Positions 1 to 40,800 of a stretch of DNA of 64,000 nt are shown piece by piece. Both the position numbers and the translations under genes were made by a program. The notes beneath the pieces were generated by a model, which searched no databases, was not told the DNA's origin, and saw nothing but the letters and a program-made list of their open reading frames with translations. Positions within the stretch are counted from its first letter, which is position 1, and the number at the start of each line of letters is the position of its first letter. The stretch lies in contig NW_003314314.1 in assembly GCF_000143415.4 (NCBI RefSeq), positions 1,307,771 to 1,371,770 on the forward strand, in the 5' to 3' direction. This stretch comes from Selaginella moellendorffii. Taxonomy: Eukaryota; Plantae; Lycopodiophyta.

Positions 1-1265
1 GCAGTGCACTCCTCACACTTTGAAAAGCTGGAGTACTTTCCTATACTCACATCCCTGAACCTGTTGCTCCACAATCTACTAAATCTAGATTGGCTCAGCT
101 TCCTGTAGCCATTACTCTGGAGTTCCCGATTCACATCTTCCAATATGGCCCCCTTGGTATACATGGAAGGGAGAACTCGTTGGGTGTCTCGTGTTCCATC
201 TTCCAAGAGGTAGGTTTTATGTGGTTGCTGCTCGCTACATGTCTCGACAAACCTCTTGAAGATTGCCTCTCCATATACAACATGACCCCTAGTTTTGTGC
301 GTACCGTCGTTCCCATGGACTACCTGTTGAACCCTTTGTTCCTCGAACTCAGTTTTGATTCTGTAGAATGTGGTTCAAGGGACTCCATAAATGATTCTCC
401 ATGCCTTCATGCAGACCAAACCCCTCTGGAAGACCATGCCCCCCACCTGATGTTCTGAAGCATCAACAGATGATCGTAATGCCTCATACACAAAATTGCG
501 AGCTGCCTTCCAGGACAATGTCTTGTATCTTGCTCTCTCCTCTTCAATAGCATCCCAATCAGCATGTTGACAGCACCTCCTCTTGCAACAAGCAACTGTC
601 GAGACCATTCGAACCTCCATCGCCATTTTCTGCCTTTTCGGTTCGTTGCTCAGATCCCTTTGGCTGCGCTTTAGGAAGGTGTACTTTCTTTTCCCATGAA
701 GAGATGTTCTATCATCAGTTGTAGTGGTGTTTGATTGTGAATCCTTCACATTCTCAAAAACTAAGTGCCTCAATTTCCACCGCACAATGCTTCCAATAGT
801 CAGACTGTTTTCTTCTGTGTCAACAACCTCTAAAATCGCAACTCCAATATCATCCCAGCCCAATTCTTGATTAGCAACCGCATCTCTTGGATCGACAACT
901 GTGGCTAAGCCCTCAGCTACCACCTCCCCCTCGGGGTTGTTTAGAAACACCTTCGCCTGAATCCATGTAGCATGGTTATTAAGATCCACGGAGGGAACAT
1001 GCGTCGCACTTGCGCTGTCCCCAACATCTGCTTTCTTCTGAAGATTTTTCAAGGCAACAACAACATTTACCCCGACGACCATCTCTCCTCGTTCAATAGC
1101 GACCACATTCCCATCGAAGACAGTCTCTACTGATACAGCAGCATTGCCTTCCCCAAGCCTTTGACAGTGTATAACAAAGTTCCGATCCATAGACACAAGG
1201 GTCCCTTTTGCAACTCTCTTCCCACCATTCAAAATGTAAACCTTTTCCCCAACCCTGAAGGCCAT
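1..1265 (-). pseudogene. Sola-like DDD transposase, 5' part (copy A), premature stop
   Basis: ORF 375-1265 continues into sequence matching the transposase of copy C. CGA in C is TGA here (GVPR becomes GVP*). Confidence 0.8.
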
Positions 1266-4146
1266 TCTGAAAGTGCAAAAAAGAAGTTAAGACCATATAA
1301 AAAATGATTGGAGAATGGCCTAAATCATAACATACCAAACAACCTCAATAGCATGAGGCCACATGCCATTATTCAAATATGCTATTGACACCCACGTGAA
1401 ATTTTGCATTCACAAAATTGGCATGAGGCCTCATGCCATCTTGATATACACACAGCTGCAAGCAAGTAAAAACATACATGACAATACGCCAGCCATGAAA
1501 TTGCAAGGGCCCAAGATGGCATGTGGCCTCATGCCATTTCTAAATGTGGTCCTAAGCCATTCCATGGTGAACATACCAGGAAGCACAAGTGCCGAATATC
1601 AAGAGGAAGCGGTAGCCACACCAAAGACAGTGCCGCTCGCAACACCGCAACTACTCGTAGCGCCGCTCGCACAAACTGCCACTCGCATAAACTGCCGCTC
1701 GCAATGGCGCTCGCAATGCCGCAACCGCTCATAGACGCATAAACCACAGCCCACAATGCCGCTTACACAAGCAGCGCTCACTGCGCTCAGCGGAACCAAG
1801 AACACGGCGCACAAAAATGATAGACCTAAGAATGAGTTCGAGAATTGAAAAATAACACACGCTTGAATGTCACATCAAATCCTCTGACAAACCAGATCTT
1901 ATGACTCCTCTGACAAATTTCAAACTAAGTAGCTTCTAGACTTTGCTGTCGGAGGTTGAACTTTGTCACATCATGTCCTTGCCTCGATCCAGCTGTGCCA
2001 TGTCAGTGATTCGAACTTTGCCATGCCATGTCAGCGATCCGCGCCAAGATTATTCGCTGTGTAAAGGAATAATTATGCTCTGTGTGTACGTCCATTTATG
2101 GCAATATAAGGCCACACGCCATTCAAAGAATAATGCTAGTCGAGCATTTTTTGGTGCATTTTTGGGTTCAAAATTGCATGAGCCCACACGCTATAAAGTT
2201 TACCTGTACCAAAAATAGAAACAGCTTTATTTACTTGGGAATTTAAGTGGTTGAGGCATTTTTAAACTTACAAACACATGCCCTACTTACATTTCTTTGG
2301 TTGCTTAAAATTCAAAAATATTATAAACCTTTCTTTTTGCATTTTCAATGTTTTCAATTATGGTTTTTGATTTTCGCAGGACCAGCCTAGTAATCTATTT
2401 GCATCCCGTCATGTTTATAGCTAGCTTTCGTTTGTCCCCTTCGCTAGCCTGAGATACATCTGCTCGGCATCTGCCTCTTACAGCATTTGCCCAGAAAGGG
2501 CATCTTTCTTCACGCAGCATTTGCCACATGTTTAGGGTTTAGGGTTTAGCAATTCAGTAACTTGATAAACATGCAAATACAGAACTTGATGCAAAATCCT
2601 TTGATATGTCACAATGCCCTTAGGACCATAAACACATTTCAATAGAGAGGGTCTTTTCATTTTATAACTCCTTACGTAGATCTTGGTGAAACCAGAGTTA
2701 GTGAAGTTAGTTTCTTGTGATCCCACATCTGATTGTGATGTCCCTTTGCAGTGTCGATGGAAAGGTCAATGCACACCAAACTGTAAAATCTTGGAGCAAA
2801 ATAATGGTCGGATCTATGGCAAATGCCCCTGAAACATTGTAAGGTTCGTGTGGTCTCATGTGGTGTCCGATCGAGATGCTTCTTTGTAGGGTCATCAAGA
2901 AAGACATTGTATACCATTCTGTAAAATCTAGTTGCGATCTAACGGTTGGATCTCCAGAAAACTCAAAAAAATCTCGCGCGTGTCAGAATATCCTAGGAAT
3001 ATACTCTTATGTGCCCCTGAAAATGGCATGCGGCCCCACGCGATTCAAGAGATAACGCCACATGACGCCGAGAATTTTTTGGTGCATTTTTTGGGTTCAA
3101 AATTGCATGAGCCCACACGCTATAAAGTTTATCTTTCCCAAATAGAGAAAAGTTTATCTGTGTCATGTGAGGTAGTTACAGTCCTTTGTGCTCGGCATCT
3201 GCCTCTTGCAGCATTTGCACTGAAAGGGAATTTTTCTCCATTCAGCATTTGGCCCTGAAAATGGCATGCGCCCACACGCCATTCAAGGAATAACGCCACA
3301 GGACGCTTGGATTTTTGGGTTTAAAATGTTTAGGGTTTTTTGGGTTTTTTCAAAATATTTTGGGTCCAACGTTTTTTGGGTTTCTTTGGTTCAAAATTGC
3401 ATGAGCCCACACGCTATAATATTGATTTGAGAGAAAAATAGAAACAGATAGAATTTCTTTATTTAGCTAAACATCTGCCATTTTTGGAAATACAAGATGC
3501 TTTGGAATATCCAATCATGCATGGTATAAATATAGCGAGGGTATTAAATGATATCCCAATCATGATCTTTCTTTTGGATTTCGCGTGCATGCAGTCCGAG
3601 GAATGATGACGTTGCGGATTTCTTTTGGATTTTACGTGCTTGCATGCGCATGGCAATCCAGAAATTAATGGTGGCGCCCAAGTCCGAGGAATGATGACGT
3701 GGCGGGATTACCAACCATTGTGACATTTCGCGCGTGTGAGGTTAGGTTTTGCATTTTGCTTCGTACTTGCGCTCGCACACTCGCGCTCGCGCTCGCATCA
3801 CACTCGCGCTCCCGCTCGCATCGCGCTCCCACTCGCGATCACGCTGACTTCTCTACAGGTTTCTCGTGTGCATCGGCGTCCACTCGCGCTTGCATCACAC
3901 TCGCGCTCGCATCGCGCTCGTGTGCATCGGCGTCCACTTCAAGACACACCCAGTTTGTAACTTCGCCGCCAACTCCGCCGCCCACTCCGCCACCCACACG
4001 CAGCCCACTTGGCGTCCCGGGAGATTTCAGCGCCACTCTCCAACTGTAAGTGGCAGAGTAGCCTTGCTGCTACGATCCGCTGCACACACAGTGCACATTC
4101 GCCAGCGAGTCCGGCCTCGATTGTCATGGCCTCCATTCGGCTTCAA

Positions 4147-7100
4147 ATGGTAAGTCTTTTAGGCCAAGTAGAAAATGGCATGAGGCCACATGCCATTCAG
4201 TAGCAACATTGGCATGCACCGATTGGGCTCTCGAGTGCAGTCCGGTTACAGATGGCGTGTAGCCTCACGCCATCTTAGGATGCAGCCTCAAGACATCTGA
4301 TGCAGTGGTGAATGGCGTTTGGCCTCACGTTATTTCCAGCTGCTAGCTTTTCATCTGTCAGCTCTAATTGTTGTGCATTTCTGAACAGGCGAGGAATTGC
4401 GTTCTTCTTCCAGCCACTGTCAATGTGGATGCAGAGAAGGGGGAGGAGCTCACCAGTTGGACTTTCGGGATGGAAGGCGAGGATCTGATGCTGTACAACA
4501 CAGATGGTGGGAGAAAAGAATGCATGGGGATCCTCATCCAAGTGACAGACACTCCATGCAGTTCCATGCAAGAATATGGACTGGCACTTGTGGTAGAGAC
4601 AGCATCCGCCCTCAAGATCCACCTTGCACATCCTAGCGGCTTCCCGGAGGGGGGCAGCGGCTATGAGGAATTCCTAGAGGGAGCTAGGGAGAGGTTGTCT
4701 AGGAGGCCCACAATTTCAAAGACGCTGCGGGTCTATGAAGATCACATGGAATCCACAGACCTCACCTACGGCGATGTTCAAAAACTATATTCCAACATTG
4801 AGCCGTTGAGAGTGCCTCCAGTTCGCGAAGCGAAGGGGAAGGGGGTCGATCTGGAAACTACCCCGAAGCTGAAAAGGGTGGTCAAGCTCAAGCCGACGTC
4901 CGACTCTGCTGCTCCAAAAAAGAAGCTACTCGGTGATGCCATTGCCTCGGGTTCGAACACTACACCCACCAAAAAGAAGAGCCGCAAAGAGCAGAAAGAG
5001 CAAGAAGAGGCAGCAAAAATCGTCGCAGATAATAGTACTTGTTACTATTCCAACAAAGTATATACAATCGACGTGAGCCGTATCGACATCCAAAGCAAAT
5101 ACAACCACAGGCTAGTATCTGATGAGTGGTTGGAGAAACTGAAGCAGAAGATGCTGGCAAGTCCAGTAACACCTGACATCGCAGACGTGATCCCCTACTA
5201 CCAAACAATGAAGGGCAAGACGAGGTTTCCAAACTTGATCAACAGGAAGGTGTTGGACGATTAGAACATCCGGTTCTATGCCGTCTCCGGGCAGCATTCT
5301 AGCTTGGCGATGCAAGAGATAGTTCTGGATATTATGGTGGGCGAGGAGGTGAAGAAAGTCTTCAAGACAAGAGTTGTCCGCCTGATAAAAGGCAACTCGC
5401 CCCTCCGATCTATCATATCCATCTCCCACGCGCAGAATGTCAAGCAAGAAACGTGCTACAAATCGGGTCTGCACGAGACATTGGCACGAACACGGAAGCT
5501 CTGAGTTCAACTGAAGAAGCCACAAAAACTAGGACAAGGACGTGCACTAGCAACTAGCGCCTGGCAGGTAAGCCTCGTTGCATGTGGCATAGCATGTGGC
5601 CTCACGCCATTTCCATTGCAGGAATTCTCGAGTCTTCTCTCGAAAACACTGAGGGTCAATGACACACTCAGCATCCATAACATTCTACTCGCGACAAAAG
5701 TTGTTTTTGACAAATGGGTAGATGTGCTAAGGAGGTACCATGACGGGGAGTTGCTAAACTCAATGGGTGTGGAGGACGGCCGGAAGCCCAATGATTTGAA
5801 GCTCAACGCCTTGCGTTTCTCGCGGTCTCTAGACGACGACGACCTTCTGACAGTGGCTAATGCTCTTCTACGTGGTGAGGTAGTCTTCAACAAGACCAAA
5901 ATGACTCCCGGCCATATTGTGACATACGAGGACTTGTGCACGACTCTGAGAGCTCGTGCGCTATTGAAGGATTGGATCTTCGAGCAAGTGGCCGTGGAGA
6001 GGGTGAGCATCGACACCACGCAAGAGATGATGGAAGAGCTGGAGTTGTCAAATGAAGACATCGACGAGTACGTGAAGGGGGCCCCCAAGTTCATCGATCT
6101 GCTGCGGGATGTCACGAAAAGTAAAGCTGAGAAGTTGGATCAGTATCCAAATTTCATTAAGAGGGATGTCGACCGCCGGCTTCAGAAACAGCTCGACCCC
6201 GCAGCAGAGGCCTATCGAGAACCTTACCGGGTATACGTGAGGATCAAAGGTGGAGGAGCATCGTTTCCCGCGGAGATGAGCAGGTCAAGAGCATCTTTTG
6301 TGTGATGGACTTCACAAACGAAGAGATCACTCATGCAGACGAAGTCAGCTCCATCATTGACTTAATGGTGGGACTTGCGGAGGTGGAATCTTCAGTCCAC
6401 TATATGATCTACGACTCCGAATCCTATCACAAGTTCTGGAAGGCCTTGAACGAGGTGAAGGCTCGGTTGAAAGGCAAGGAGATGCGGGAGATCCATGGGA
6501 TAATGGCTAAGAAGAAGATACTGACGAATGTCTGCATCTTCACACTCGCCCTTGTTATTGGTCCTGCAGCAGAGTGGGACTGGAGTGACTTCCCAGCTTC
6601 GTTCGACAAGGCCGATCGAATTGATCTGAGGGAGGTCAATTTACCCGTGTCTAAGGAACTGAAGACGGCTATGGAGCTTTCGAATCCAGAGAAAGCTCCA
6701 GGTGCAGCATGGGAAATGCTCAGCTGGGTCTTCAACGCAATAGCGGGTGACACCAAGGGCAAATGCGTTGTCGAGTACAACTGCGGCGGACTATTCTTTC
6801 GAGCCGCACTACTCAAGGGTGTCCCGTGGGTTGCGGTGACAAACTCCATTGAAGAGGTGACTTCAATGGAGCATATAATTACAGTTGCCAAAGAAAAACA
6901 GTATCTTCTCTGCGAACCTGGTGAGTACGCACTTTAAGTTTAAATGTTATCTCACAAGCTCTGTATGCAGGAGCGTGGCCACCCCCAGATGCTGAAATGG
7001 CGTTAACAGCTACTGATGTTAGGCCGAGCTCACAACCTGCACAAGGTAAGGTCACGTGAGGCCTCACGCCATTTTGATTATAGATTGTTGTGAATATTCA

Positions 7101-9195
7101 GACACGAGGACTGAAAAGCGCACTGGTGGCGCGTCGAAGAAGGACAAACAGACAAGCAATAGGAAAAAAGGAGGTACAAATTATATTTGCAATGGCGTGT
7201 GGTCTCATGCCATTCCTTGCAGGAGACACTTCTTCAAAGGCAAAACAGGCAAGCACCAGCCAAGCTCAAACTGACAGTGGTCATAAAAAGCGAAAGCACG
7301 TTGGACAGTCGTCGGGATCAGAGGCGTTTGATTTGAAAAGGAAGAAGGGCAACGAAAAGGTGATAGGTAATGCCTCGCGGTTATGGCGTGTGTGCTCATG
7401 CCATTCATTGCAGATCAAGGGCTGAGTGAAAGGAGCCAGTCACCACCTCCTGACTCAGATTCCTATGGCGGACTCCCCTTCCCCAATCTCAATGGAGAGG
7501 TACAATGGATGAGGGATGCTTTTCAAGTTAGGGCCACGTTTTTCTCATCTCGTCGTCTTCGAAGGGTGCAAGAACGTGCAGAAACCATGTTAAGACAGTC
7601 GGGTGAGGATACGGTCCTAGGTCAAGCACTGAAACATGCTATGGATGTCTTGTATTTTGAGATGGAGACTCGGCCAGATGATTTTCCCAAGATGGTCCTG
7701 GAAAAACAAGCCATCCAGCCTGAGCAGCCTATGGAAGAAATGCAAGAGGGGGATGAGGAGCCAGAGAAAGATAATGAGCAGGAAGAGCAGAAGGACGAAG
7801 AGGAGGACAAAGAAGAGGAGGACGAAGAAGAGGAGGACGAAGAGGACTTGGATGGTCCTCACAATGGTGACGATCACAATAACGACGACAACGATGATGA
7901 CGACGATGGCCAGCCTGAGGTGGCCAAAGAGCAGCGGAGGAAGGTCATACAAGACAAACCATCAGGTAAATAATAGTACATCCATTCCTAACCTTTTACC
8001 ATTTCTAACATTGTCCATGTAGGTTGCAGAGCAAATGGTAAGTAGAGATTATTCAGTTGAATTAAGATACAAACTCTAGCCTTTAGTGTCGAGGAAGGAT
8101 AGTGCCAAGCAAGGGTCGAAACGTATGTCCAATCCTTCAGAATCAGCAGTGCGCCCAATAGCAGTTGATGGTAAATACAGTATAGTCGATTCAATGTGCT
8201 AATGAGTTTGTTTTTAGTAGCCAGTAGGGAGGATACCATCTCAATCGAAGGGAGATATTTGGACATGCATATGGATCCGCCAGTGGACTCTACTTGCCTG
8301 CAAGAGTCATCAGAGCTGGTGGAGGCTACTATCCATATCAACGCCAAGCAAGCTGACCACGCTCCACTTGATGTTGCCCATACCACTGAGTCAATCTTGT
8401 CCACGTATCCAACTGACGGTGACCAGGCGCCATTGGACCAAGTTGGTCAAAAGAGACAGATTCACATTAATCACACGGGAGAAACTGCGGGATCTAATAA
8501 TGACCATGCGACACTTAAAACAGAGGGCCGGGTTCAATTTGCAATTGGGAGTTTGGACATCCATGATGCGCCACAATGCATTAACGTTGCTACAGATGAT
8601 GCACGATCAGACGCAAGTAATATTACCATTTGACTTTCTCCTAATGCAGGAGGATTGCTTGACTATGGTCCATGTGAGGGGTAGCAAGCCCATCTTCGTC
8701 AAGCCAGAGGCTGTAGTGATGAACCGGACTGCTAGGTCAAGTGAAATCCTCATCATCGATGACTCGCCGATTAAAACTGCAGCGAACACGCATACATATG
8801 CAGTGCACCCCATCTCTTGCAGTATGGAAACTAGGGAGAAGAAACTGTATGTTCTGGGGGACCTTGCAAAACGGCTTGGAGCGATGGTGATAGAGAACCG
8901 GCCAATCCAGGAGGTGGCTGCAGAAATCAACCAAATGGCAGATGGAACGGTATATCAGAAGCCATTTGATCGGACAGACACCAGTCATCATTTATGGCAT
9001 GTATATTGTCTAGCCAAGCACTATCCGCATCTCCATAATCTGCTCAACCGGATGGGTTCTTCGACCACTGAACATGAGCGTGGACGTATTAAAGAAGAGA
9101 TGGCATTACTATTGGGTTTAAATCCTGATAGTGTGGAGAGTGATGAAATTCCAAGATTATTGTATAGGCGTTGGAGGCAAAAAATAACAATCTGA
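4147..9195 (+). pseudogene. Multi-exon cargo gene (copy A): ParB/Srx-like, degenerate MTase-like, acidic linker and FCP1-like phosphatase regions
   Basis: ORFs 4368-5264, 5616-6305, 6302-6937, 7383-7973 and 8368-9195 are linked by GT-AG introns (4150-4388, 5568-5621, 6921-6970, 7046-7101, 7174-7222, 7367-7413). It has stops and deletions relative to copies B and C. Confidence 0.7.
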
Positions 9196-9613
9196 GATGG
9201 CATGTATTTATTTAAAAATGTAACTTATTATGGCATGGGGTTCCATGCCATTGTATTAATATTAAAAGACAATTCTTTGAGAGGATTTGCATTATACTAG
9301 AAGTGTTACAGCATGTTATTGGAAGTCTACGAAGTTGTTTTATTAATAAGGGGAAAGTAAAGATTGAATGGGGACTTGGGCTCCACCTAGACTCGGAGCA
9401 ACTAAGCCAATATTAAAAGGATGGAAAGAAATTGGACGACGATGACAAGGAGAAGAGAGAGGTGAAGCAGTGGCAGGGGGAGGAGAAGTGATTGAGTAGA
9501 CATTTCCTTGTTTAAAATAAAATGGCATGTGCCTCAATGCAGTTGAATTTTGTTATATTTATATACTATATAAAGGTTTGGAAACCTTATTTTACAAGTG
9601 GGATAATGACAAT

Positions 9614-9635
9614 TCCCACTTTAACGAAATAGAGC
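9614..9635. repeat. 22-bp terminal inverted repeat (cargo-gene end, copy A)
   Basis: Exact reverse complement of 20129-20150 and identical to 28117-28138 and 39489-39510. Confidence 0.95.
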
Positions 9636-9784
9636 TTGCTTTTAGTTTACATATTTAGTTTGCCTTTGTTGAGCCCATTCTAAAGAATCCCTCACTAGAT
9701 TCCAAATGTTGAGTCTTTTTGCCATGAATGCCTCCACTGCACGTAACTTTCCATGATACTCGGCCATGCCGACTTCCACAAGAC

Positions 9785-11467
9785 TGTGAGACACAAAATC
9801 CCCAAGCCCCAAAGTGGAGCCGGAAGGGCACCACGTGATAGTGGCCAAAGCGAAAGCCAAACGAGCGTAACACGTTTGGACTAAAAGCTCCGACTTGGAA
9901 GGTCGAGAGTGGGAGTGGAACTCCCAACAAAGTGCTCGAGGAGCGAGCACGAGGCAACCAATAAGCAAGGCTCCAAAAAGGGGATCCAAAAAGGACCCGA
10001 GATAGAGTCCGAGATGGACCCGAGATGGAGTCCGAGATGGAGTCCGGGATGGACCCGAGATGGAGTCTGAGATGGACCGAGACAAAGTCCGATATGGAGT
10101 CGGAGATGGACCCGAGATGGAGTCCGAGATGGAGTCCGAGATGGACCCGAGATGGAGTCTGAGATGGACCCGAGATGGAGTCTGAGATGGACCCGAGATG
10201 GAGTCCGAGATGGACCCGAGATGGAGTCTGAGATGGACCCGAGATGGAGTCTGAGATGGACCCGAGATGGAGTCCGAGATGGAGTCCGAGATGGACCCGA
10301 GATGGAGTCCGAGATGGAGTCTGAGATGGAACCGAGACTGAGACTGAGACTGAGGCCGAGACTGAGACCGAGACCGAGTCCGAGTCCGAAACCGGGACCG
10401 AGACTGAGTCCGAGTCTGAGTTCGAGCCCGAGATCGAGTCCGAATACTAATACAGGCAGTTGGGTGAAAGCCCAAAGCAATTCGTCCCCCAGGGGGGGGG
10501 GGGCCTGCGGGGGGTTCCAAAAGTTTAGTAGGGAGAGTGTGGGGGTTGGAGCCCAGTGGAGCCAGTTTGGCCAGGAAAGGCCAGTTTGGCCCAGGCAGGC
10601 CAGACCCAGTGTTGGGTGATGAGCTGACCACTGGGCAATCCAAGACTAGAGTGAACACGGACCGACAAGCTGGGTAGCTTGGTGAAGTGTTCAAGAGTCG
10701 GCTCTAGTTTCCCCGGGAGATCAATTGGCCGATGCTCCCAGTCCAAGTGTGGGTGGCACTACCTACTTGGATACCAGGCGTGGCTCAATGGAACCTCGCT
10801 CTAAGCCCATGGCTAGAGCACCCAAGGGCGGAAGGCGGGGAGAGTACCCAGGTGGCTCGCGTAAGGCCACGGTGTTCCAAAATGTTGTCCCAAAGGCCCA
10901 GACTGTGGAAAGGAAGAGGGCAGTCCTCTGGGGCAGTGACCAAGGATACAGTTGAGTGGTGAGGAAGTCCCAAAGGACCATGGGACTTAGTGGTCGGGCC
11001 TGTGGGCCTCGATCCAATGGCAGTGTTGGCGAACATGGCCATGGGCAGAAAGGGACTTGGTGAAGACCAAAAAGGGGATATTGGGGAAGGCTATCCCCCA
11101 TGTCTATGGGCATCTTAAGGATGCTAAGGAGTGGATCTGGAATGATCACTCATGGACAAATGGCCCAGTCCTTGAGAGATGGGACTGTGATGCAGGTGGT
11201 GTTAGACCATCGGTGTGACCAAGGTAAAGGGGCATGGCCTTAGCGTAACGGGCTGATATGTCAGTGGTACTTTGGGGTGTCGGTCATGGGATCGGACACG
11301 TGGAGCATTTGGATCAAGTGCAAAGGTTGAGTGGCGGGGATGCCATTCTTGGGGCTAGCAAGCCCAAGTCTGAAATAGGACTTATGGAGGTTGTGAGTGA
11401 GACTCCTCCCAATGGTTGAAGGTGTGGTTAAGTGACTAAAGTAGAATGGAAAATTTAGTCGCTTACA
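9785..11467 (+). mobile_element. Solo LTR, family LTR-A (~1.7 kb)
   Basis: TGTGAG...CTTACA termini with a perfect 5-bp TSD AAGAC (9780-9784 and 11468-11472). Homologous to 28185-29936 and 44536-46252. Confidence 0.9.
9995..10445. repeat. Tandem 11-12 bp (GAGATGGAGTCC/GAGATGGACCC) and 6-bp (GAGACC/GAGTCC) repeats inside LTR-A
   Basis: Directly visible. Equivalent arrays lie at about 29180-29705 and 44765-45285. Confidence 0.9.
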
Positions 11468-12939
11468 AAGACCTTCAATAGCTCACCCATTGATGACTTC
11501 CCATGGACTCCCCCTAATACTCGAATGTGGTGAGTTGTTATAACACATTTCCCCAAGTCCCAAATGACTTACCTAATTAGCCTAGTCTCTAGAGATATAG
11601 CATCCCAAATAATCCTCCAGTTGCCTATTCACTCTTTCTATTTTTCTGTCTATCAAGAAGCTTTAGTGCTATCAAATTTGACTTAATACCCAATACCTGT
11701 TTCTTGGTCATAGGCTAGGGTGAGTTTCAATTTGGAGCGATACGATTCCAGAAGAGTTCTCTAGAATCTACTGGTGAAGATTTTATCTCGATCTGAGATG
11801 ATCTCTTCTGGCCTTTCCTCCACTCAAACCACTTGTTCAAAGAATAACTTCGCCACACCTTCTGCATCCACTTCTATTATGGTGGGTATAAAATGTGCCA
11901 TATTCAAAAACCGGTCCACCACCACGAATATCACATCAAACCCCTCACTTGGGGGAAGTCCTTTGATGAAGTCCATTGTAAGACATTTCTACGGATGATC
12001 TAGAATTGGGAGGCTTTGTAATAAACCCCTACTATCCTTAATCACAGCTTTGACTTGCTAACATGTCGGACATGTCTTTACATAGCCTTGGACGTCCTTA
12101 GCCATGTCTGGCCAGTGATACTTCCTCTTGAATAAGCCCATCATTTTGGGCATTCTACTGTGTTCTACAAAAGATCCATCATGACACTCTTTTAATGCTA
12201 CTTTCCTTAGTTTCCCTTCTTGAACATACACCCTCATTTGTTTATAATAGATGAGTCCATTGCATTCCGCATAACCTATTTTCTCTTTTATTGGCAACTC
12301 ACCTCTCTAGTGAGCATCCCGTGCCTCTTGGTTCTTTAGCAACACTTCTTGTGCTAGACTATCATTCTCATATCTTGTCTGCACATCATCCCAAAAGGTT
12401 GCTCTTGCACTGGATATTGCCAACTTCAAGCTTGCCTTTCGACTTAGAGCATCTGCCACGATGTTGTTTTTCCCAAGTTTATACAGAATCTCACAATTAA
12501 ACTTGGCCAAAGCATTGTCCCACCACCCTTGTTTTCCTTTTATGTCAGGTTCCAATGCATCCCCTCACCTTGAGCCTAGGTTTGCAAGCTTGATATGAAG
12601 GCATGGAATGCATCCTTATCACCCATATCCATGACAAGTATCTTCTTTGCCATAAATGCATTCACATACTCTTGAATGGTTCCAGTCTGCTTTAGCCTAC
12701 TCAGTTCATCCCTTAAGTGCAGAGTAGCATTCGGAGGAACGTAAGTCACATGGATCATCACCTTCATCATTTCCTAAGTGGCCACTGGTCCTTCGTTGGC
12801 CTCTGTTGTTCTCCACCAAAACTTACATTATCTGCCAAGTATGGTTTTGCATATAAGACCTTTTCCAAGCTCGATAACCACAACACTCGGAACTAATCCT
12901 CCATATAGTCCCGAAGCAAATGTTACACCCATTGTTTGA

Positions 12940-28184: not shown

Positions 28185-29936
28185 TATAAGCGACTAATTT
28201 TTCCATTTTACTTTAGTCACTTAACCGCACCTCCGACCACTTGGAGGAGTCTCACTCGCAATCTCCATAAATCCTATTTTGGACTTGGGCTTACTAGCCC
28301 TGAGAATGGCATCCCCGCCACTCAACCTATGCACTTGGTCCAAGTGCTCCATGTGTCCGATCCCATGACCGACACCCTAGGGTACCACCAACATATCAGC
28401 CTGTTATGCTAAGGCCATGCCCATTCACCTTCGTCACAACGATGGTCTGACACCACCTGCATCCCAGTCCTATCACTCAAAGACTGGGCCATCCATCCAT
28501 AAGTGATCATCCCAAATCCACTCCTTAGCATTCTTAAGATGCCCACAGACATGGGGATTAGCCTTCCCCAATATCTCCGTTCCAGTCCCCACCAAGTCCC
28601 TTTTCATCCTTGGCCGTATTCGCCAACACTGCCACTGGATCAAGGCCTACGGGCCCGACCACTAAGTCCCATTGTCCTCTAGGACTTCCTCCCTATGTGA
28701 CTGTGTCCTTGGTCACCACACCAGAGGACTACTCCTCTTCCTTTCCACAATCTGGGACTTTGGGACGACATTTCGGAACACCGTGGCCCTACGCGGGCCT
28801 CGTGGGTACTCTCCCGGCCTTTCGCCTTTAGGTGCTCTAGCCATGGGCTTAGAGCGAGGTTCCATTGAGCCACACCAGGTATCCAAGTAGGTAGTGCCAC
28901 CCACACTTGGACTGGGAGCATCGGCCAGACGATCTCCCGGGGGAACTAGAGCCGGCTCTTGAACACTTCACCAAGCTACCCCGCTTGTCGGTCCGTGTTC
29001 ACTCTAGTCTTGGACTTCCCAATGGTCAGCTCATCACCCAACACTGGGTGCAGCCTCTCTGGGCCAAACTGGCCTTTCCTGGCCAAACTGGCTCCACTGC
29101 AGTCCTCCCCCTTACTATACTTTTGGAGCTCACCAAACCCCCTAGGGTTTGGGAGACGAATGCTTTGGGCTTTCACCCTCTCAGACTCGGACTCGAACTC
29201 GGACTCGGACTCGAACTCGGACTCGGACTCGGACTCGGCCTCGGTCTCGGTCTTGGTCTCGGTCTCGATCTCGGTCCCGATCTCAGTCTCGGTCTCGGTC
29301 TCGGTCTTGGTCTCGGTCTCAGTCCCGGACTCGGTCTCGACCTCGGACTCCCTCTCGGGTCCTTCTCGGACTCCATCTCAAATTCCATCTCGGGTCCATC
29401 TCGGACTCCATCTCGGACTCCCTCTGGGACTCCGTCTCGGTCCATCTTGGACTTCGTCTCGGACTCCGTCTCGGTCCATCTCAGACTCCATCTCGGACTT
29501 CGTCTCGGTCCACCTCAGACTCCATCTCGGACTCCATCTCGGACTCCATATCAAACTCCGTCTCGGTCCACCTTGGACTCCATCTCGAACTCCGGCTCGG
29601 TCCACCTCGGACTCCATCTCGGACTCTGGCTCGGTCCACCTCGGACTCCATCTCGGAATCCATCTCGGTCCATCTTGGACTCCATCTTGGAGTCCATCTC
29701 GGATACTTCCACGTGTCATGTGTTGGTCCTTTTTAGGTCCCTTTTTGGAGCCTTGCTTATTGGTTGCCTCGTGCTCGCTCCTCGAGCACTTTGTTGGGAG
29801 TTCCACTCCCGCTCTCAACCTTCCAAGTCGGAGCTTTTAGTCCAAACGTGTTACGCTCATTTGGCTTTCGCTTCGGCCACTACCACGTGGCGCCCTTTCG
29901 GCTCCACTTTGGGGCCTAGGGATTTTGTGTCTCACA
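28185..29936 (-). mobile_element. LTR-A 5' LTR with Met-like PBS; internal region cut by transposon copy B
   Basis: Reverse complement of LTR-A. On the minus strand it is followed by TGGTATTGGAGC (28170-28181). No TSD. Confidence 0.8.
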
Positions 29937-31352: not shown

Positions 31353-34300
31353 CCCTTCTTCCTTTTCGAATCAAACGCCTCTGATCCCGACGACTGTCCA
31401 ACGTGCTTTCGCTTTTTATGACCACTGTCAATTTGAGCTTGGCTGGTGCTTGCCTGTTTTGCCTTTGAAGAAGTGTCTCCTGCAAGGAATGGCATGAGAC
31501 CACACGCCATTGCAAATATAATTTGTACCTCCTTTTTTCCTATTGCTTGTCTGTTTGTCCTTCTTCGACGCGCCACTAGTGCGCTTTTCAGTCCTCATGT
31601 CTGAATATTCACAACAATCTATAATCAAAATGGCGTGAGGCCTCACGTGACCTTACCTTGTGCAGGTTGTGAGCTCGGCCCAACATGGGTATCTTCAACA
31701 GTAGCTATTAACGCCGTTTCAGCATCTGGGGGTGGCCACGCTCCTGCATACAGAGCTTGTGAGATAACATTTAAACTTAAAGTGCGTACTCACCAGGTTT
31801 GCAGAGAAGATACTATTTTTCTTTGGCAACTGTAATTATATGCTCCATTGAAGTCACCTCTTCAATGGAGTTTGTCACCGCAACACACGGGACACTCTTG
31901 AGTAGTGCAGCTCAAAAGAATAGTCCGCCGCAGTTGTACTCGACAACGCATTTGCCCTTGGAGTCGGAAGCAGGTGACCCACCCGCTATTGCGTTGAAGA
32001 CCCAGCTGAGCATTTCCCATGCTGCACCTGGAGCTTTCTCTGGATTCGAAAGCTCCATAGCCGTCTTCAGTTCCTTAGGCACGGGTAAATTGACCTCCCT
32101 CAGATCAATTCGATCGGCCTTGTCGAACGAAGCTGGGAAGTCACTCCAGTCCCACTCTGCTGCAGGACCAATAACAAGGGCGAGTGTGAAGATGCGGACA
32201 TTCGTCGGTATCTTCTTCTTAGCCATTATCCCATGGATCTCCTGCATCTCCTTGCCTTTCAACTGAGCCTTCACCTCGTTCAAGGCCTTCCAGAACTTGT
32301 GATAGGATTCGGAGTCGTAGATCATATAGTGGACTGAAGATTCCACCTCTGCAAGTCCCACCATTAAGTCAATGATGGAGCTGACTTCGTCTGCATGAGT
32401 GATCTCCTCGTTTGTGAAGTCCATCACACAAAAGATGTTCTTGACCTGCTCATCTCCGCGGGAAATGATGCTCCTCCACCTTTGATCCTCATCCGAATTC
32501 ACATATACCCGGTAAGGTTCTCGATAGGCCTCTGCTGCGGGGTCGAGCTGTTTTTGAAGCCGGCGGTCGACATCCCTCTTAATGAAATTTGGATACTGAT
32601 CCAACTTCTCAGCTTTATTTTTTCGTGGCATCCCGCAGCAGATCGATGAACTTGGGGGCCCCCTTCACGTACTCGTCGATGTCTTCATTTGACAACTCCA
32701 GCTCTTCCATCATCTCTTGCGTGGTGTCGACGCTCACCCTCTCCACGGCCACTTGCTCGAGGATCCAATCCTTCAATAGCGCACAAGCTCTCAGAGTCGT
32801 GCACAAGTCCTCGTATGTCACAATATGGCCGGGAGTCATTTTGGTCTTGTTGAAGACTACCTCACCACGTAGAAGAGCATTAGCCACTGTCAGAAGGTCG
32901 TCGTCGTCTAGAGACCGCGAGAAACGCAAGGCGTTGAGCTTCAAATCATTGGGCTTCCGGCCGTCCTCCACACCCATTGAGTTTAGCAACTCCCTGTCAT
33001 GGTACCTCCTTAGCACATCTACCCATTTGTCAAAAACAACTTTTGTCGCGAGTAGAATGTTATGGATGCTGAGTGTGTCATTGACCCCCAGTGTTTTCGA
33101 GAGAAGACTCGAGAATTCCTGCAATGGAAATGGCGTGAAGCCACATGCTATGCCACATGCAACGAGGCTTACCTGCCAGGCGCTAGTTGCTAGTGCACGT
33201 CCTTGTCCTGGTTTTTGTGGCTTCTTCAGTTGAACCCAGAGCTTTCGTGTTCGTGCCAATGTCTCGTGCAGACCCGATTTGTAGCACGTTTCTTGCTTGA
33301 CATTCTGCGCGTGGGAGATGTATATGATAGATCAGAGGGGCGAATTGCCTTTTATCAGGCGGACAACTCTTGTCTTGAAGACTTTCTTCAGCTCCTCGCC
33401 CACCATAATATCCACAACTATCTCTTGCATCGCCAAGCTAGAATGCTGCCCGGAGACGGCATAGAACTGGATGTTCTGATCGTCCAACACCTTCCTCTTG
33501 ATCAAGTTTGGAAACCTCGTCTCGCCCTTCATTGTTCGGTAGTAGGGGATCACGTCTGCGATGTCGGGTGTTACTGGACTTGCCAGCATCTTCTGCTTCA
33601 GTTTCTCCACCCACTCATCAGATACTAGCCTGTGGTTGTATTTGCTTTGGATGTCGATACGGCTCACATCGATTGTATATACTTTGTTGGAATAGTAACA
33701 AGTACTATTATCTGCGACGATTTTTGCTGCCTCTTCTTGCTCTTTCTGCTCTTTGCGGCTCTTCTTTTTGGTGGGTGTAGTGTTCGAACCCGAGGCAATG
33801 GCATCACCAAGTAGCTTCTTTTTTGGAGCAGGAGAGTCGGACGTCGGCTTGAGCTTGACCACCCTTTTCTGCTTCGGGGTAGTTTCCAGATCGACCCCCT
33901 TCCCCTTTGCTTCGCGAACTGGAGGCACTTTCAACGGCTCAATGTTGGAATATAGTTTTTGAACATCGCCGTAGGTGAGGTCCGTGGATTCCATGTGATC
34001 TTCATAGACCCGCAGCGTCTTTGAAATTGTGGGCCTCCTGGACAACCTCTCCCTAGCTCCCTCTAGGAATTCCTCATAGCCGCTGCCCCCCTCCGGGAAG
34101 CCGCTAGGATGTGCAAGGTGGATCTTGAAGGCGGACGCTGTCTCTACCACAAGTGCTAGTCCATATTCTTGCATGGAACTGCATGGAGTGTCTGTCACTT
34201 GGATGAGGATCCCCATGCATTCTTTTCTCCCACCATCTGTGTTGTACAGCCTCAGATCCTTGCCTTCCATCCCGAAAGTCCAACTAGTGAGCTCCTCCCC

Positions 34301-34593
34301 CTTCTCTGCATCCACATTGACAGTGGCTGGAAGAAGAACGCAATTCCTCGCCTGTTCAGAAATGCACAACAATTAGAGCTGACAGATGAAAAGCTAGTAG
34401 CTGGAAATAACGTGAGGCCACACGCCATTCACCACTGCATCAGATGTCTTGAGGCTGCATCCTAAAATGGCGTGAGGCTACACGCCATCTGTAACCGGAC
34501 TGCACTCGAGAGCCCAATCGGTGCATGCCAATGTTGCTACTGAATGGCATGTGGCCTCATGCCATTTTCTACTTGGCCTAAAAGACTTACCAT
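31353..34593 (-). pseudogene. 5' two-thirds of cargo gene (copy C) with ParB-like and MTase-like regions
   Basis: ORFs 33332-34372, 32615-33259 and 31912-32631 match copy A. Frameshift near 32620. Confidence 0.75.
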
Positions 34594-35056
34594 TTGAAGC
34601 CGAATGGAGGCGTGACAATCGAGGCCGGACTCGCTGGCGAATGTGCACTGTGTGTGCAACGGATCGTAGCAGCAAGGCTACTCTGCCACTTACAGTTGGA
34701 GAGTGGCGCTGAAATCTCCCGAGACGCCAAGTGGGCTGCGTGTGGGTGGCGGAGTGGGCAGCGGAGTTGGCGGCGAAGTTACAAATTGGGTGTGTCTTGG
34801 GCCATCTTGGGCCCTTACAATTTCATGGTTAGCATATTGTCATGTATGTTTTTACTTGCCTGCAGCTGTGTGTATATCAAGATGGCATGAGGCCTCATGC
34901 CAATTTTGTGAATGCGAAATTTCACGTGGGTGTCAATAACATGTTTGAATAATGGCATGTGGCCTCATGCTATTGAGGTTGTTTGGTATGTTATGATTTA
35001 GGCCATTCTCCAATCATTTTTTGTATGGTCTTAACTTCTTTTCTGCACTTTCAGAA

Positions 35057-37881
35057 TGGCCTCCACAAGTGCGACGCATGTTCCCTCCGTGGATCTTAAG
35101 AACTGTGCTACATGGATTCAGGCAAAGGTGTTTCTAAACAACCCCGAGGGGGAGGTGGTAGCTAAGGGCTTAGCCACAGTTGTCAATCCAAGAGATGCGG
35201 TTGCTAATCAAGAATTGGGCTGAGATGATATTGGAGTTGCGATTTTAGAGGTTGTTGACACAGAAGAAAACAGTCTGACTATTGGAAGCATTGTGCGGTG
35301 GAAATTGAGGCACTTAGTGTTTGAGAATGTGAAGGATTCACAATCAAACACCACTACAACTGATGATAGAACATCTCTTCATGGGAAAAGAAAGTACACC
35401 TTCCTAAAGCGCAGCCAAAGGGATCTGAGCAACGAACCGAAAAGGCAGAAAATGGCGATGGAGGTTCAAATGGTCTCGACAGTTGCTTGTTGCAAGAGGA
35501 GGTGCTGTCAACATGCTGATTGGGATGCTATTGAAGAGGAGAGAGCAAGATACAAGACATTGTCCTGGAAGGCAGCTCGCAATTTTGTGTATGAGGCGTT
35601 ACGGTCATCTATTGATGCTTCAGAACATCAGGTGGGGGGCATGGTCTTCCAGAGGGGTTTGGTCTGCATGAAGGCATGGAGAATCATTTATGGAGTCCCT
35701 CGAACCACATTCTACAGAATCAAAACTGAGTTCAAGGAACAAAGGGTTCAACAGGCAGTCCATGGGAACGACGGTACGCACAAAACCAGGGGTCATGTTG
35801 TATATGGAGAGGCAATCTTCAAGAGGTTTGTCGAGACATGTAGCGAGCAGCAACCACATAAAACCCGCCTCTTGGAAGATGGATCACGAGACACCCAACG
35901 AGTTCTCCCTTCCATGTATACCAAGGGGGCCATATTGGAAGATGTGAATCGGGAACTCCAGAGTAATGGCTACAGGAAGCTGAGCCAATCTAGATTTAGT
36001 AGATTGTGGAGCAACAGGTTCAGGGATGTGAGTATAGGAAAGTACTCCAGCTTTTCAAAGTGTGACGAGTGCACTGCTATCAAAATGGCTTTGTCGAAGA
36101 ATTCTTGCAGCGCTCAAGAGCGAGAGACGTTGGTTAGAAGGCGGCTCGACCACAACATCGAGCAGAGAAGCTGCAGGACTGCATATTATCATAACAGGAT
36201 TCTCTCCATAGAGAGACCTGACTCTTACCTCTGCATCATCCACGACAAAATGGACCAGAAAAAGACGTGCTTACCTCGACTCAATCCTGCCCCCAAGGCA
36301 ATCTCTTCATCCATGCAGCTGCCTGTGTCTCTGTTTGGCATAATCGCTCATGGGCATGGTGCCCAGAACTATGGGAACTTCTTTGTACCTCTATGGGGTG
36401 GCGGGGGTGCAAACATGATGATTGCGTCCCTAGTAAAACACTTAAGGTCTCTGCAAAGTGCGTAGATTGAGCTGAACGGCCAACCCTTGCATAAGGCCCT
36501 TGTCGATCGAACCCCATACAGGGTTCAGCTGGAGGAGGAGCAAAGGCTTGCAGTATCGCGTGGGGCCCCATGCCATCCCAGTGAATATGTTGGCCGTCAG
36601 ATTGTAGGGTTATCACGTGAGGCCTCATGCCATTCCGACGAGGCTGGTCGCCCGGTGAATGCACAGCCTCATCCAAACGAAGTAGAATCTCAAGGAAGTT
36701 CTTGCGGCCCATGTGGCCTTCCACCCCATCTTCTGCTTCAAACAGACAATGCTGGCAGTGAGAACAAAAACGTGTACGTCTTCACGTACTTGGCAATGCT
36801 TGTTGCCAAAGGCATATTTGAAACGGTTACACTTGGCTTTCTCATGGTTGGGCACACTCATGAAGACGTCGATGCCATGTTCAGTCACCTGGCAGAGTCC
36901 CTCCGGCGATCCAATGTCCTCACCCTCCCACAACTCTACGATGAATTCCAAAATTGCATCAAAGGCACTGTTGAAGCTGCACTTGTGACAGAGGTTCCAG
37001 ACTTTAAGGGGTTTGTAAGAGGCTACATCAGGGACGGATCCGAAACGCTGATTGGCCACTCCAAGCCTCTTCAGTTTCATTTCAGCATGCGTGACGGTGC
37101 TCCAGTGATGAGGTACAAGATGAGAGAATGGGACATAGTGTGGCTGCCAGTGGACGGCATTGAACTCTTCAAGAGAGATCCCATAACTGGGGAACCTATG
37201 ATTCCTCAGGGTTCCCCACGGCCGATGCACCCGGATGGACTCAAAGACCAGGAAAGTATAGTGGCCGGGATTAGACAGCATATTGCCTTCTGGAAGAGGG
37301 GGTTGGTGTTTGGTGGAGAATCCTATTTTCAGAGGTGCAAGCCTTTGCTCGAATATTGGGAGAAGATTATATCTGCTATCCAAAATGGGCCGGTTGTATA
37401 TGAAGAATTGGAAGAGTCCTTTTGGCCAGAACCCAGAGCACCAGATAGTAGCGGAACAATGTCCTCTGGAAATGCAGTGACAGATAACGATGTTGAGGAT
37501 CACTATTGTGGGCCGAAGAACAAGAAGCCGGATTCAGCATTCAATCCAGTACAGGTCTGCAAAGGAATGGTCGTGCTTGTCAGACCCAGTAATAAAAAAC
37601 AAATGATATGGGTGGGGCGTTGCATCACTAATGCAGAGGAGGACGCGGAAACTAACTCCTTCAATGTAATTGTGGAGTGGTTCAAGCCAAGTTCCAGATA
37701 TACGAAGGATTGCCTAGAAAAGAGATGGGTGCTGAATCCAAGGGATCCTAGCATGAGCATATCGGTGGATAATGTTGTGCATGGTTGGATGCGGAAGCAG
37801 AGTGCCACCATCACCTTGCCAGACCATGCAAGAGATGCAGCAAGAGCATTCATAACCCTGGTTCAAGGTGAGATTCATTAA
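35057..37881 (+). pseudogene. Sola-like DDD transposase (copy C), nearly complete
   Basis: Same-frame ORFs 35293-36465 and 36487-37881 are separated by one TAG. CxxC-H motif plus catalytic D (HDKMD), D (TDNA-ENKN) and D (GHTHEDVD). 5' deletion of about 250 bp relative to copy A. Confidence 0.85.
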
Positions 37882-40800
37882 TATTCCTTTACTAAGTTTC
37901 TAATATATTTTATTTCAAGGTGAACAATTCGAATCTGAATCAGAGGAGGCGTGATGGCATGTGGCCTTATGCCATTCCTAGGTGAGATGATACAAATAAC
38001 AAGTATAAATTCTTAGTTGTTCTAGCAAATCTTACTTAAAGTTCAAGGTGAACAAGCCGAATATGAATTCATCGGATTGTTATAACAAATTGCAAGGTGA
38101 TGGCATGAGGTGATACGCCATTTGAGAGTGGTAGCCATTCCTATATAAGGTGAGTGAAATATTTATTAGAAATACCTCATTCAATTGTGCACTTCTAAGT
38201 CTTGGTCCACTCAGTACTGTTTGCATGTTTCTATTTTAATTCTTTCTCTAAAATGTTATTTAGCATGTGGCTTCATGCCATTGCTCTCCACAATCATGCA
38301 TTGAATTTTTCTATCCTTGCATAATACTTCTCCATATATATAGCATGTGCACACATGTGATATGGTTCATTAGGCCTGATATAGTGTGTGAGGTAAAACA
38401 AAGATGATGTGACATATGCATTTACCAATCACACGTGCATAAATCTAATAATATGGCGTGTGGCCCATATTAATGGCACATAAACCCATATTGTGGGCTT
38501 ATGTGCTTTATGTACCATCATTCCCTTGCAGCTTGTGTGTTGGTTTCCTTTTATAACACAACGAACTCCATATTTTAGGGTGAAGAGCATTCTCATGGCA
38601 AGCACAAAATCTGTAAGTGAGGCAGAAAAGGAGACGGAGAAGGAGATAGGTGAAGATGTAGAATATATAAGTCTTCCAAACTCCCCGTACTATACTCCAG
38701 GTGATCATTTTTCTGAACAAACGGCAACATTAACAACTATTGAGAATGCCCCAGTAACGTCAGAGACAACAATTCAAAGCAAAACAACTGACCCGGAGAA
38801 GGATGATAGTACCGCTGAGAGTACCAAACAGGAGGTGTCCACTAGCGCTTAGGCTTATAATGGCGTGTGCCCTCATGCCATTTACTTGATCACCAAATAC
38901 CTTTTTCCCTTTGCACTAGTATATCTTAATACCGGTCTGAGAAATAGAATGGCATGTGCCCTCAGGCCTTTTACTAAATCACCTTTGAAAGAAATGCAAG
39001 CCTCTATGTCGTAAAAAAAAGGTCCTAGAGAAATTCCTTAATAATATGAATGTTATTTAGTTTCATGAAAATACACTAAGGGTCAAATGAGTTAAATGAC
39101 TTCTCCAGACTAGCAATGCCTCTTGCTACACCTTCACAAATAGATTCGTTAGAAAAAGATAATATTGAATAATATCTAAATGTTCTCACCATTAAGTTAT
39201 ATGTCTGGCTAATAGGAATGACGTTCATCTTGGAAAGCTCACCACACGCTCAATGAACAAACAAATAGTGTGTGCGCGCATGCCATCGCTCTTCTTTAGC
39301 TTCAAATTCGGCTTGTTCACCTTGACAATGAGATTTATTATACAACCAGATGGACTCAGTCTGGACACAAAGTCACCGCGCTAGTCACCATGCCCCAGAT
39401 ATGTCTAGCCTCTGGACAAAAAACATATAATTTCACGTCATTTTCAAATACTTGAAAATTTGTACTTAGTCCCATTTTACTGAATAAATCCCACTTTAAC
39501 GAAATAGAGCTTAAGTAGCTAGTACAATAGGTAGGAACGTTAACAAGGGAACTTAACTAAGGCTAATGCAGTGGTGGTTGGATAGACGAGATAAACTTGC
39601 AAATTAGAAATGAAAGATTTATGGTTTACAATTTGATATCGGAGTCTTTTCCTCAATTCTAATGAAGGATAGAGGCAAATTGCTAAAAGATGGCTAAGGT
39701 AAGGTATAAGTGAACCAAGGCAGAGATGGAACATCCTCTAGAGATGGAGCCTCTGATCAAACAAGAAGCTATAAATGAGGAATTTTTGTATGATAAGGAT
39801 GTGAGTGAGCATACCTTCAAACAAGAGTTTGGTGGTGAGGTTTGGTCATCCAAGGCTCAATTGGATGCTTTAAAAGGAAAATTAGCACAGATTAATGCCC
39901 TACTGGAGACCCTTGTTCGCAATTTAAAGTGTGATAAGAAGTGAAAGAAAAGGCAAAAAACAGCAAATGCTGGTAGTGTAGAAGGCATAGATCCCTTGGC
40001 AGGGACTGAGGCAAAACCAAATAAGGTCAAACAAATTGAAGTGGAATTAGTCCCTCAAGAAATTCCTAAGTACAAACCAAAGCCCTCACCAGTCTTCAAG
40101 GGAATGAATGACTATAAGTTGATAGAGGAGTGGTTTTACAATATAGAGGACAACTTTCGAGTGTTGTGATTACCAAGCTTGAAAAGGGTCCCATATGCAA
40201 AACCATACTTAGTAGATAACACTAAATCTTGGTGGAGAACAATAGAGGCCAACAAAGGACTAGTGGCCACTTGGGAAGTGATGAAGGTGAAGATCCATGT
40301 AACTTATGTGCCTTTGAATGTTACTCTCTATTTAAGGGACAAACTGAGTAGACTGAAGCACACCGAAACCATTCAAGAGTATATGAATGTGTTTATGGCC
40401 AAGAGGATTCTTATCATGGATATAGGTAATATAGACATATTCCATGCCTTCATATCAAGCTTATAGACCTGGGCTTAGGGCGAGGTGATGCATTAGAACC
40501 TGACTAACTATAAGGAATCTTTAGATGCAGCTATTATGGTGCATTTTGATGATAACTTGTGAAAGGGGAACACAACAAAGTTAAAATCCATGTTCAACAA
40601 AGGAGTCTAACCAAGAGGGACATATAATAAAAAAAAATTTAGGAGGAGTTTCTCTAAGAATGAGTCTTTAGGGTTTTGGAAAGATAGATCTGGTGGCCAA
40701 AGAGCAAGTACGTGGGGGATTTAGGTAAAAAGGGATAAACCCTTTAATAAAAAAATGAAGTTTGCTAATAGTGCAAGAAACAACGTATGTTTCAATTATG

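Follow-up and report, generated by a model that had tools for sequence, protein, structure and literature searches.

A palindrome array and a second gene in a Sola1-like transposon of Selaginella moellendorffii

Why would a large DNA transposon scatter ~30 copies of one palindrome along its body, and which protein, if any, would read them? The question is raised by a 64,000-nt stretch of the Selaginella moellendorffii genome (contig NW_003314314.1, positions 1,307,771 to 1,371,770; hereafter the window), which holds three copies (A, B and C) of an element bounded by terminal inverted repeats (TIRs) and equipped with a transposase gene and a divergent second gene (the cargo gene). The first-pass annotation of this DNA had suggested that the cargo encodes a ParB-like protein, which would load on the palindromes as on parS sites. 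Our analysis leads to another answer, which we consider probable: the element is of the Sola1 type, its palindrome array goes with the transposase lineage, and the cargo is specific to its own lineage.

The element, its transposase and its palindrome

Comparison of the window with itself by BLAST delimits three copies of one element that are 95-98% identical, total 25.8 kb and leave 38 kb of other DNA (Table 1). The perfect 22-bp TIR GCTCTATTTCGTTAAAGTGGGA has exactly four matches in the window, where none is expected by chance, and the two end types of the element diverge straight after base 22. Copy B has undergone an internal deletion of ~6 kb (junction at 24444) and keeps 520 bp (21334-21854) that are lost in A, as well as a 691-bp segment (22971-23662) with additional mini-exons and palindromic introns. 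This segment is removed from both A and C by a shared deletion (22971-23662; 7223-7366) bounded by short CAAG repeats, which makes A and C members of one subfamily that had suffered the deletion and B the descendant of an older form. Copy C lacks the segments A 1012-1256 and A 1520-3940. The composite of A, B and C measures 13.1 kb and grows to ~14.3 kb once the pieces found only in B are added, which is the length of the ancestral element with its perfect 22-bp TIRs.

All three copies are dead and ~2% diverged. The substitutions between them amount to 240 in 12.4 kb, 81% of which are transitions and 35% of which lie in CpG context, and the observed/expected ratio of CpG in the copies is 0.62-0.72, as would be expected for methylated, silenced sequences. 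Besides, a Logan contig (L001, run ERR10900155, 3577 bp) contains a fourth copy, 97% identical, internally deleted and with the same TIR end, which is independent and belongs to this species or a close relative of it.

The transposase is intronless and comprises ~1,023 amino acids (aa) when its pieces are joined (A 375-1265 on the minus strand, C 35293-36465 and C 36487-37881). Both C pieces are in the same frame and are split by a CAG>TAG stop codon at a place that is open in copy B. The protein matches the Pfam profile DUF7869 (E 1e-39 to 1e-42) and shares 22-45% identity with 44 homologues; those with a named source belong to Chromera and to two liverworts, Riccia sorocarpa and Calypogeia fissa. 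An alignment of 15 homologues contains three conserved blocks (..CIIHDKMDQ.KT..PR, LLLQ.DN...ENKN.Y and FL.VGHTHED.DA.F), in which D87, N88, K94, N95, G122-H-T-H-E-D127 and D129 are invariant, in addition to the DKMDQ block. In their supplement, Majorek et al. 2014 (PMC3985635) give core blocks for each of the three Sola groups, those of Sola1-1_AP being LCVAVFDLEKVLTTPQGE, FSFYSDNCGGQNRNRFIY and THTFLERGHTQS (cores FDLEKVLTTP, SDNCGGQNRNRF and ERGHTQS). In a motif-level comparison made by eye, the blocks of our transposase match those of Sola1-1_AP one for one, and the same three blocks are present in A. pisum XP_003249065, while the fit to Sola2-1_HM and Sola3-1_HM is poorer (PMC3985635). 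A relationship to Sola2 was also considered and rejected, the published Sola2 transposase alignments (PMC3627910) having neither GHTH nor ENKN blocks. At the motif level, the protein is thus supported as a Sola1-like DDD transposase of a cut-and-paste DNA transposon. This comparison also links the Pfam family DUF7869, of which we found no published mention, to Sola1 transposases.

The N-terminal part of the transposase contains a cysteine cluster and a helix-turn-helix (HTH)-like stretch, GLVCMKAWRIIYGVPRTTFYRIK. Its first ~160 residues (375-1265, minus strand) also include two similar beta-rich stretches (GEKVYILNGGKRVAKGTLVS and AKVFLNNPEGEVVAEGLATVV), and it gives a weak match, below cut-off, to the TNP1/En-Spm 'Transposase_23' profile (E 0.011). 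In copy C, part of this region is lost in a 247-bp deletion.

The 24-bp palindrome AATGGCATGWGGCCWCATGCCATT yields 17 matches with at most 3 mismatches in 22 positions and 50 with at most 6 in 24. All 50 lie inside the copies; none was found in the 38 kb outside them and none in 20 shuffles. They recur in a few kinds of places: in seven to eight of nine mini-exon introns, after stop codons, in the intergenic region as parts of short direct repeats, and in frame within variable or Pro-rich linkers of both proteins. Two of them (36554 and 36611) stand in frame in a variable linker of the transposase open reading frame (ORF) of copy C. That they could be introns there was ruled out, as splicing at 36553-36581 puts a TGA in frame. 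The palindromes are thus confined to harmless places, namely ultrashort introns, untranslated regions, intergenic repeats and disordered linkers of both proteins.

These results bear out what the first-pass annotation had described: partial copies that complement each other to a ~14-kb element with perfect 22-bp TIRs, a Sola-like transposon with a ~1,020-aa DDD transposase, and one dispersed palindrome of its own. The divergent, intron-rich second gene also stands as a prediction, with GT..AG introns whose removal keeps the frame open.

Palindromes across related transposases

The related loci comprise two environmental contigs, Riccia, Calypogeia and 80 metagenome loci, including moss-associated ones; 85 loci and 1.05 Mb were analysed. 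A co-occurrence of cargo and transposase in other lineages, which the first-pass annotation had advised looking for, was not observed, as none of these loci has a cargo homologue beside the transposase. No other conserved second gene was convincing in them either. Recurring minus-strand ORFs were considered for this role and set aside: they have no Pfam matches and overlap recurring plus-strand ORFs, and therefore look like antisense shadows of the N-terminal region of the transposase.

Many of the related loci nevertheless carry their own recurring palindrome of 20-24 bp around or inside the transposase gene (Table 1). The best palindrome cluster has at least three members in 20 of the 85 loci and at most one in any of 90 block-shuffled controls; in the two non-element stretches of the window, the best cluster has only one member. 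With a laxer consensus search, 169 palindromes were counted within -4/+3 kb of the transposase versus 26 elsewhere in an equal length of DNA. The transposase gene itself has short GT..AG introns that hold some of them. Since relatives that lack the cargo carry palindromes of their own, the palindrome array is a trait of the clade that is tied to the transposase and for which the cargo is not needed.

The palindromes also change in an ordered way. Transposases with 55-72% identity have palindromes with a common GTGG/CCAC core, whose outer bases vary in step between the two arms; once identity drops below ~50%, the palindromes are no longer related. A sequence that changes but stays symmetric is a sign of selection acting on a dimer-binding site or a hairpin. 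That each lineage has its own palindrome suggests, in turn, that the reader of the motif should be encoded by the element.

At the Riccia sorocarpa locus (L004:4800-12250, CM100796.1), the transposase relative is surrounded and interrupted by at least 15 copies of the 22-bp palindrome GCTTCGGGACGCGTCCCGAAGC, adjacent pairs included, with one of them placed after a GTATGT donor site within the gene.

A different explanation needs no binding protein at all. The palindromes could be a self-propagating or duplication-prone module, such as introner-like units or tandem duplications of an exon with its intron, that persists only where it is neutral. Several features of their placement fit this proposal: the GT..AG introns that they fill measure 38-54 nt and do not exceed palindrome-free introns (42-57 nt) in length, the mini-exons are all symmetric (1-1) and multiples of 3, a unit of 24 nt equals eight codons and so stays in frame in coding linkers, local tandem duplication is evident, and the palindromes of relatives are also found in short introns. 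However, a module spreading by itself is at odds with the absence of palindromes from the 38 kb outside the copies, which includes the introns of the host pyruvate kinase (the one host gene examined), and no target-site duplications (TSDs) flank the palindromes. Moreover, a neutral by-product would not maintain a palindrome that differs with each transposase lineage and retains its symmetry through changes in both arms. We therefore regard this explanation as rather unlikely.

The second gene and the surroundings

What, then, does the cargo gene encode? It is divergent to the transposase gene and contains at least 17 predicted introns. Those of copy A are 38-81 nt long and of GT..AG type, and further ones are found in B. 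Nine consecutive mini-exons of copy B (87, 90, 57, 57, 87, 36, 108, 90 and 108 nt), all of phase 1-1, read through except for one copy-specific stop. The gene of copy A carries stop codons at 5262 and 5502, a frameshift close to 6255 and both deletions (691 and 520 bp). At ~23704 in copy B (minus strand), the 3' splice site of a palindromic intron reads AA in place of the AG of A, another copy-specific lesion. Since stops, frameshifts and deletions differ among the copies, their common ancestor had an intact cargo gene. From the predicted gene model, its protein would have comprised roughly 1,600-1,800 aa.

Only one module of this protein is recognisable, a diverged C-terminal phosphatase-like (NIF) domain of the FCP1/SCP type. 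The ORF 20884-21462 of copy B (minus strand) scores 26.7 bits (E 5e-6) with the NIF profile (PF03031), above the cut-off of 21.8, over positions 1-126 of its 160, and the corresponding piece of copy A, which lacks the N-terminal part, reaches 18.1 bits. Motif IV (IIDDSP) is present. Motif I reads DLNGV instead of DxDxT in B, the only copy that retains it, the general-acid Asp being replaced by Asn. A single G>A transition would explain this change, which may be a family trait or confined to this copy. The FCP1-like assignment of the first-pass annotation is thus upheld for the domain, which exceeds the Pfam cut-off, but not for an intact catalytic motif I.

The other two modules named in that annotation did not withstand the searches. 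In full, the model is that a ParB-like domain would load on parS-like palindromes, next to a degenerate methyltransferase (MTase)-like module, and that a phosphatase of the type acting on the C-terminal domain (CTD) would be recruited against silencing. It can draw on short motif resemblances ('VYTIDVSRIDI...FYAVSGQHSSLA' for ParB, 'CVMDFT' and 'VVEYNCGGLFF..VAVTNSIEE' for the MTase), on a NIF domain that is real and on palindromes that are private to the element. Yet neither a ParB family (thresholds up to E 5-10) nor a beta-class N6/N4 methyltransferase (PF01555, lax thresholds) was matched in Pfam, NCBIfam, PHROGs or PDB sequences. The stretch resembling the ParB arginine patch (GxxR, PF02195) reads SGQHSS and contains no arginine, and the candidate methyltransferase motifs read MDFT and NCGGLF, DPPY motif IV and FxGxG motif I being absent. 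Homologues were found neither for the 346-aa 'ParB-like' ORF nor for the NIF piece, and a full HMMER search of 1.84 billion representative proteins gave no relatives of the 250-aa 'MTase-like' ORF. Structure prediction brought no support for either fold, since the single-sequence AlphaFold2 models of the two pieces are unusable (mean predicted local distance difference test scores of 34 for the 'ParB-like' and 38 for the 'MTase-like' piece). Finally, the altered motif I of the NIF domain and the equivalent palindrome arrays of cargo-less relatives speak against this model, which we hold to be very improbable.

The cargo might alternatively be a non-functional passenger assembled from transduplicated pieces of host genes, as in Pack-type elements. 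Its absence from all 85 related loci, the lack of homologues among the representative proteins, the weak NIF match with its altered motif and the broken state of all three copies would agree with such an origin. On the other hand, the copy-specific lesions imply an ancestral frame that was open across at least 17 predicted introns, the presence of the element's own palindrome in the cargo introns shows a long residence in the element, and the transposase is equally broken in these copies. A passenger of this kind is, in our view, unlikely.

The copies lie among debris of long terminal repeat (LTR) retrotransposons. Three copies (9785-11468, 28184-29936 reversed and 44536-46252) of an LTR-like repeat, which contains short tandem repeats in an internal array, are ~80-84% identical. 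A tRNA-Met-type primer-binding site, TTGGTATTGGAGC (~28172-28184, reversed), comes after the one adjoining copy B, and copy B therefore sits just inside an LTR retrotransposon. Its flanks form an imperfect direct target duplication of ~15 bp (20114-20128, ATACCCACCACAAAA; 28139-28153, ATAGCACCAATAAAA), and the ~15-bp stretch is present once at paralogous uninterrupted ('empty') sites in other retrotransposon copies. The right flanks of both copy C and the independent copy in L001 start with TTAA. Between copies A and B, the ORF 17180-17800 (plus strand) encodes an RVT_3/RNase H domain (E 2e-9) and is a retrotransposon remnant. The only clear host gene of the window encodes a pyruvate kinase of the plant cytosolic type (57773-59429, minus strand; Pfam PK and PK_C, E 9e-52 and 8e-22). 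As its introns are ~50 nt long, short introns are a host trait; very short introns are typical of Selaginella-like lycophytes.

Table 1. Coordinates of the element in the window and palindromes of related loci (gene models, exons and introns of the cargo are predicted)
Feature	Position	Strand	Remarks
TIR sites	9614-9635; 20129-20150; 28117-28138; 39489-39510	-; +; -; -	exact 22-mer match
Copy A	1-9637	-	cut by window start; cargo-side TIR 9614-9635; transposase 5' part on - strand, cargo gene on + strand
Copy B	20127-28138	+	both TIRs; 8.0-kb internal-deletion derivative
Copy C	31353-39510	+	truncated on cargo side at 31353; transposase-side TIR 39489-39510
Transposase ORF, copy C	35293-37881	+	Pfam DUF7869, Sola1-type DDD (motif level); in-frame TAG 36463-36465
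Catalytic blocks, copy C	36244-36255; 36745-36771; 36850-36873		HDKMDQ; QTDNAGSENKN; GHTHEDVD
Transposase 5' part, copy A	1-1265	-	ATG 1263-1265; holds ~80 N-terminal residues deleted in C
Divergent intergenic region, copy A	1266-4125		palindromes at 1347, 1417, 1515, 2172, 3022, 3101, 3260, 3395; short dispersed direct repeats; 1520-3940 absent from C
Perfect palindrome (example)	34543-34566		AATGGCATGTGGCCTCATGCCATT; equals A 4174-4197
Cargo gene, copy A (predicted)	4126-9195	+	large exons 4389-5567 and 5622-6920, then mini-exons
Cargo gene, copy A, later exons (predicted)	7414-7969; end at 9195	+	acidic exon; NIF/C-terminal exon
Introns holding the palindrome, copy A (predicted, GT..AG)	4150-4203; 4245-4285; 4308-4388; 5568-5621; 7046-7083; 7174-7222; 7367-7413	+	first one 54 nt
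Palindrome-free intron, copy A (predicted)	6921-6970	+	
Cargo exons, copy C (predicted)	31915-34372	-	346-aa ORF 33335-34372 ('ParB-like' query); 31915-32664 ('MTase-like' query)
FCP1/SCP-type NIF (HAD) domain, copy B	20884-21477	-	motif I FDLNGVL (GAT 21409-21411, AAC 21403-21405); motif IV ILIIDDSP
Palindrome of L003			arms CCCTATGGCTAT and GTGGCCATAGGG; 13 copies
Palindrome of L043			arms ..TGGTGG and CCACCA..; 12 copies
Palindrome of L023			arms CCACGGGTGA and TCACCCGTGG; 10 copies
Palindrome of Riccia (L004)			arms GCTTCGGGACG and CGTCCCGAAGC; at least 7 copies
Palindrome of L002			arms GCATCGGGGGA and TCCCCCGATGC; 7 copies
Palindrome of L006 (closest relative)			arms ATTTGGCCAT and ATGGCCAAAT; 6 copies

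Reading of the palindromes and comparison with known systems

How might such an array work? We propose that the palindromes would be multi-copy binding sites of a DNA-binding protein, encoded by the element and acting as a dimer, which co-evolves with them. The binder would most simply be the transposase, whose Cys-rich/HTH N-terminal part could label elements of its own family along their full length. Binding may serve the assembly of the transpososome, self-regulation or an anti-silencing function similar to that of the VANC proteins. The cargo would then be a lineage-specific acquisition that the palindrome system does not require. For its NIF domain, phospho-proteins at the element, for example the CTD of RNA polymerase II, may be substrates or simply binding partners.

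Several observations weigh against this proposal or against the assignment on which it builds. Sola elements have a defining 4-bp TSD (PMC10741241), and none is seen at copy B, the only copy with both ends (AAAA on the left, ATAG on the right); the Sola1 placement is a motif-level one. With a strict detector, 48 of the 85 related loci have at most one palindrome, many of these contigs being short or carrying partial copies. The cargo gene model is a prediction from sequence alone, and the binder is suggested only by the co-occurrence of gene and palindrome. Shared descent by itself gives close relatives common internal sequence, so that only the maintained symmetry argues for selection. Finally, the sites bound by transposases are usually subterminal and do not extend along a whole element.

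The Sola superfamily is said to go back to Bao et al. 2009. To our knowledge, it is among the least studied groups of DNA transposons, and we know of no cis-acting sites or accessory genes in it beyond the capture of Fanzor. Sola1 corresponds to the RNase H-like clade E.10 of Majorek et al. 2014 (PMC3985635) and is known from a moss (PMC9033089). The window's element resembles it as a TIR element with a large DDD transposase of the Sola1-1_AP pattern (D-x6-TP, DNCxxxN+N+[FY], GHTxxxD) and a size within the reported range of 2 to >15 kb (PMC10741241). It differs in its large second gene and its private palindromes, and in that no 4-bp TSD could be shown. That Sola elements usually encode a transposase only, as the first-pass annotation had it, is too strong a statement, since Sola2 elements carrying Fanzor1 have been published (PMC3627910). 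These likewise combine a Sola-superfamily element with an extra protein gene beside the transposase, but here the group is Sola1 and the passenger is an orphan NIF-domain protein and not a TnpB-like nuclease.

The closest parallel in form is the VANDAL21/VANC21 anti-silencing system of Arabidopsis (PMC5735166, PMC10398659). The analogy drawn in the first-pass annotation survives in this respect, with a family-specific short motif in the element's own introns and intergenic DNA, its multiplication in tandem repeats and different motifs in related families, whereas the ParB/parS mechanism attached to it does not. Besides, the superfamilies differ (Mutator-like elements versus Sola1), the VANC motif is a non-palindromic 9-mer in one orientation whereas palindromes of 20-24 bp are found here, no VANC homologue is present, and the trait, known here from sequence, occurs in relatives in which no conserved accessory gene was found. 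By analogy, a VANC-like role of the putative binding sites in self-recognition is plausible.

Two other systems share some of these features. The TNPA protein of En/Spm (CACTA) elements recognises 12-bp motifs that are present in many copies, some as inverted pairs, and are confined to subterminal regions. An element-encoded protein that recognises many short motif copies within its own element would thus have a precedent, but the motifs described here span the full element, including introns and coding linkers. Introner elements consist of a short repeated unit in spliceosomal introns, with the same unit in many unrelated host genes. The palindrome is likewise a short repeated unit that makes up most of each intron's length; unlike introners, it does not occur in the 38 kb outside the copies (one host gene examined), has no TSDs and also occupies intergenic and coding positions.

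A bolder extension, which we put forward only tentatively, is that a Sola1-like (DUF7869) clade of bryophytes and lycophytes uses a private code: each lineage would carry 6 to 30 of its own 20-24-bp palindromes, distributed along the element and often as the core of ultrashort introns, bound for self-recognition by a co-evolving element-encoded dimer (the transposase or, here, possibly also the cargo). It would form an independent VANC-like system, maybe coupled to a NIF module directed to the phospho-CTD. We found no published link between Sola1 and palindromes, and the cis-architecture, which is unusual and extends across a clade, is apparently undescribed.

To conclude, if the palindrome arrays are protein-binding sites, they would represent a second, independent case, after VANDAL/VANC, of a transposon family that marks its own body with a co-evolving motif, and would be informative on the ways in which transposons evade or modulate silencing. 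With motifs lodged inside introns of 40-50 nt, a gene conceals its cis-elements in an unusual manner, which may also bear on intron gain. Besides, this work flags a ~14-kb family whose members will be mistaken for host genes by gene-prediction software.

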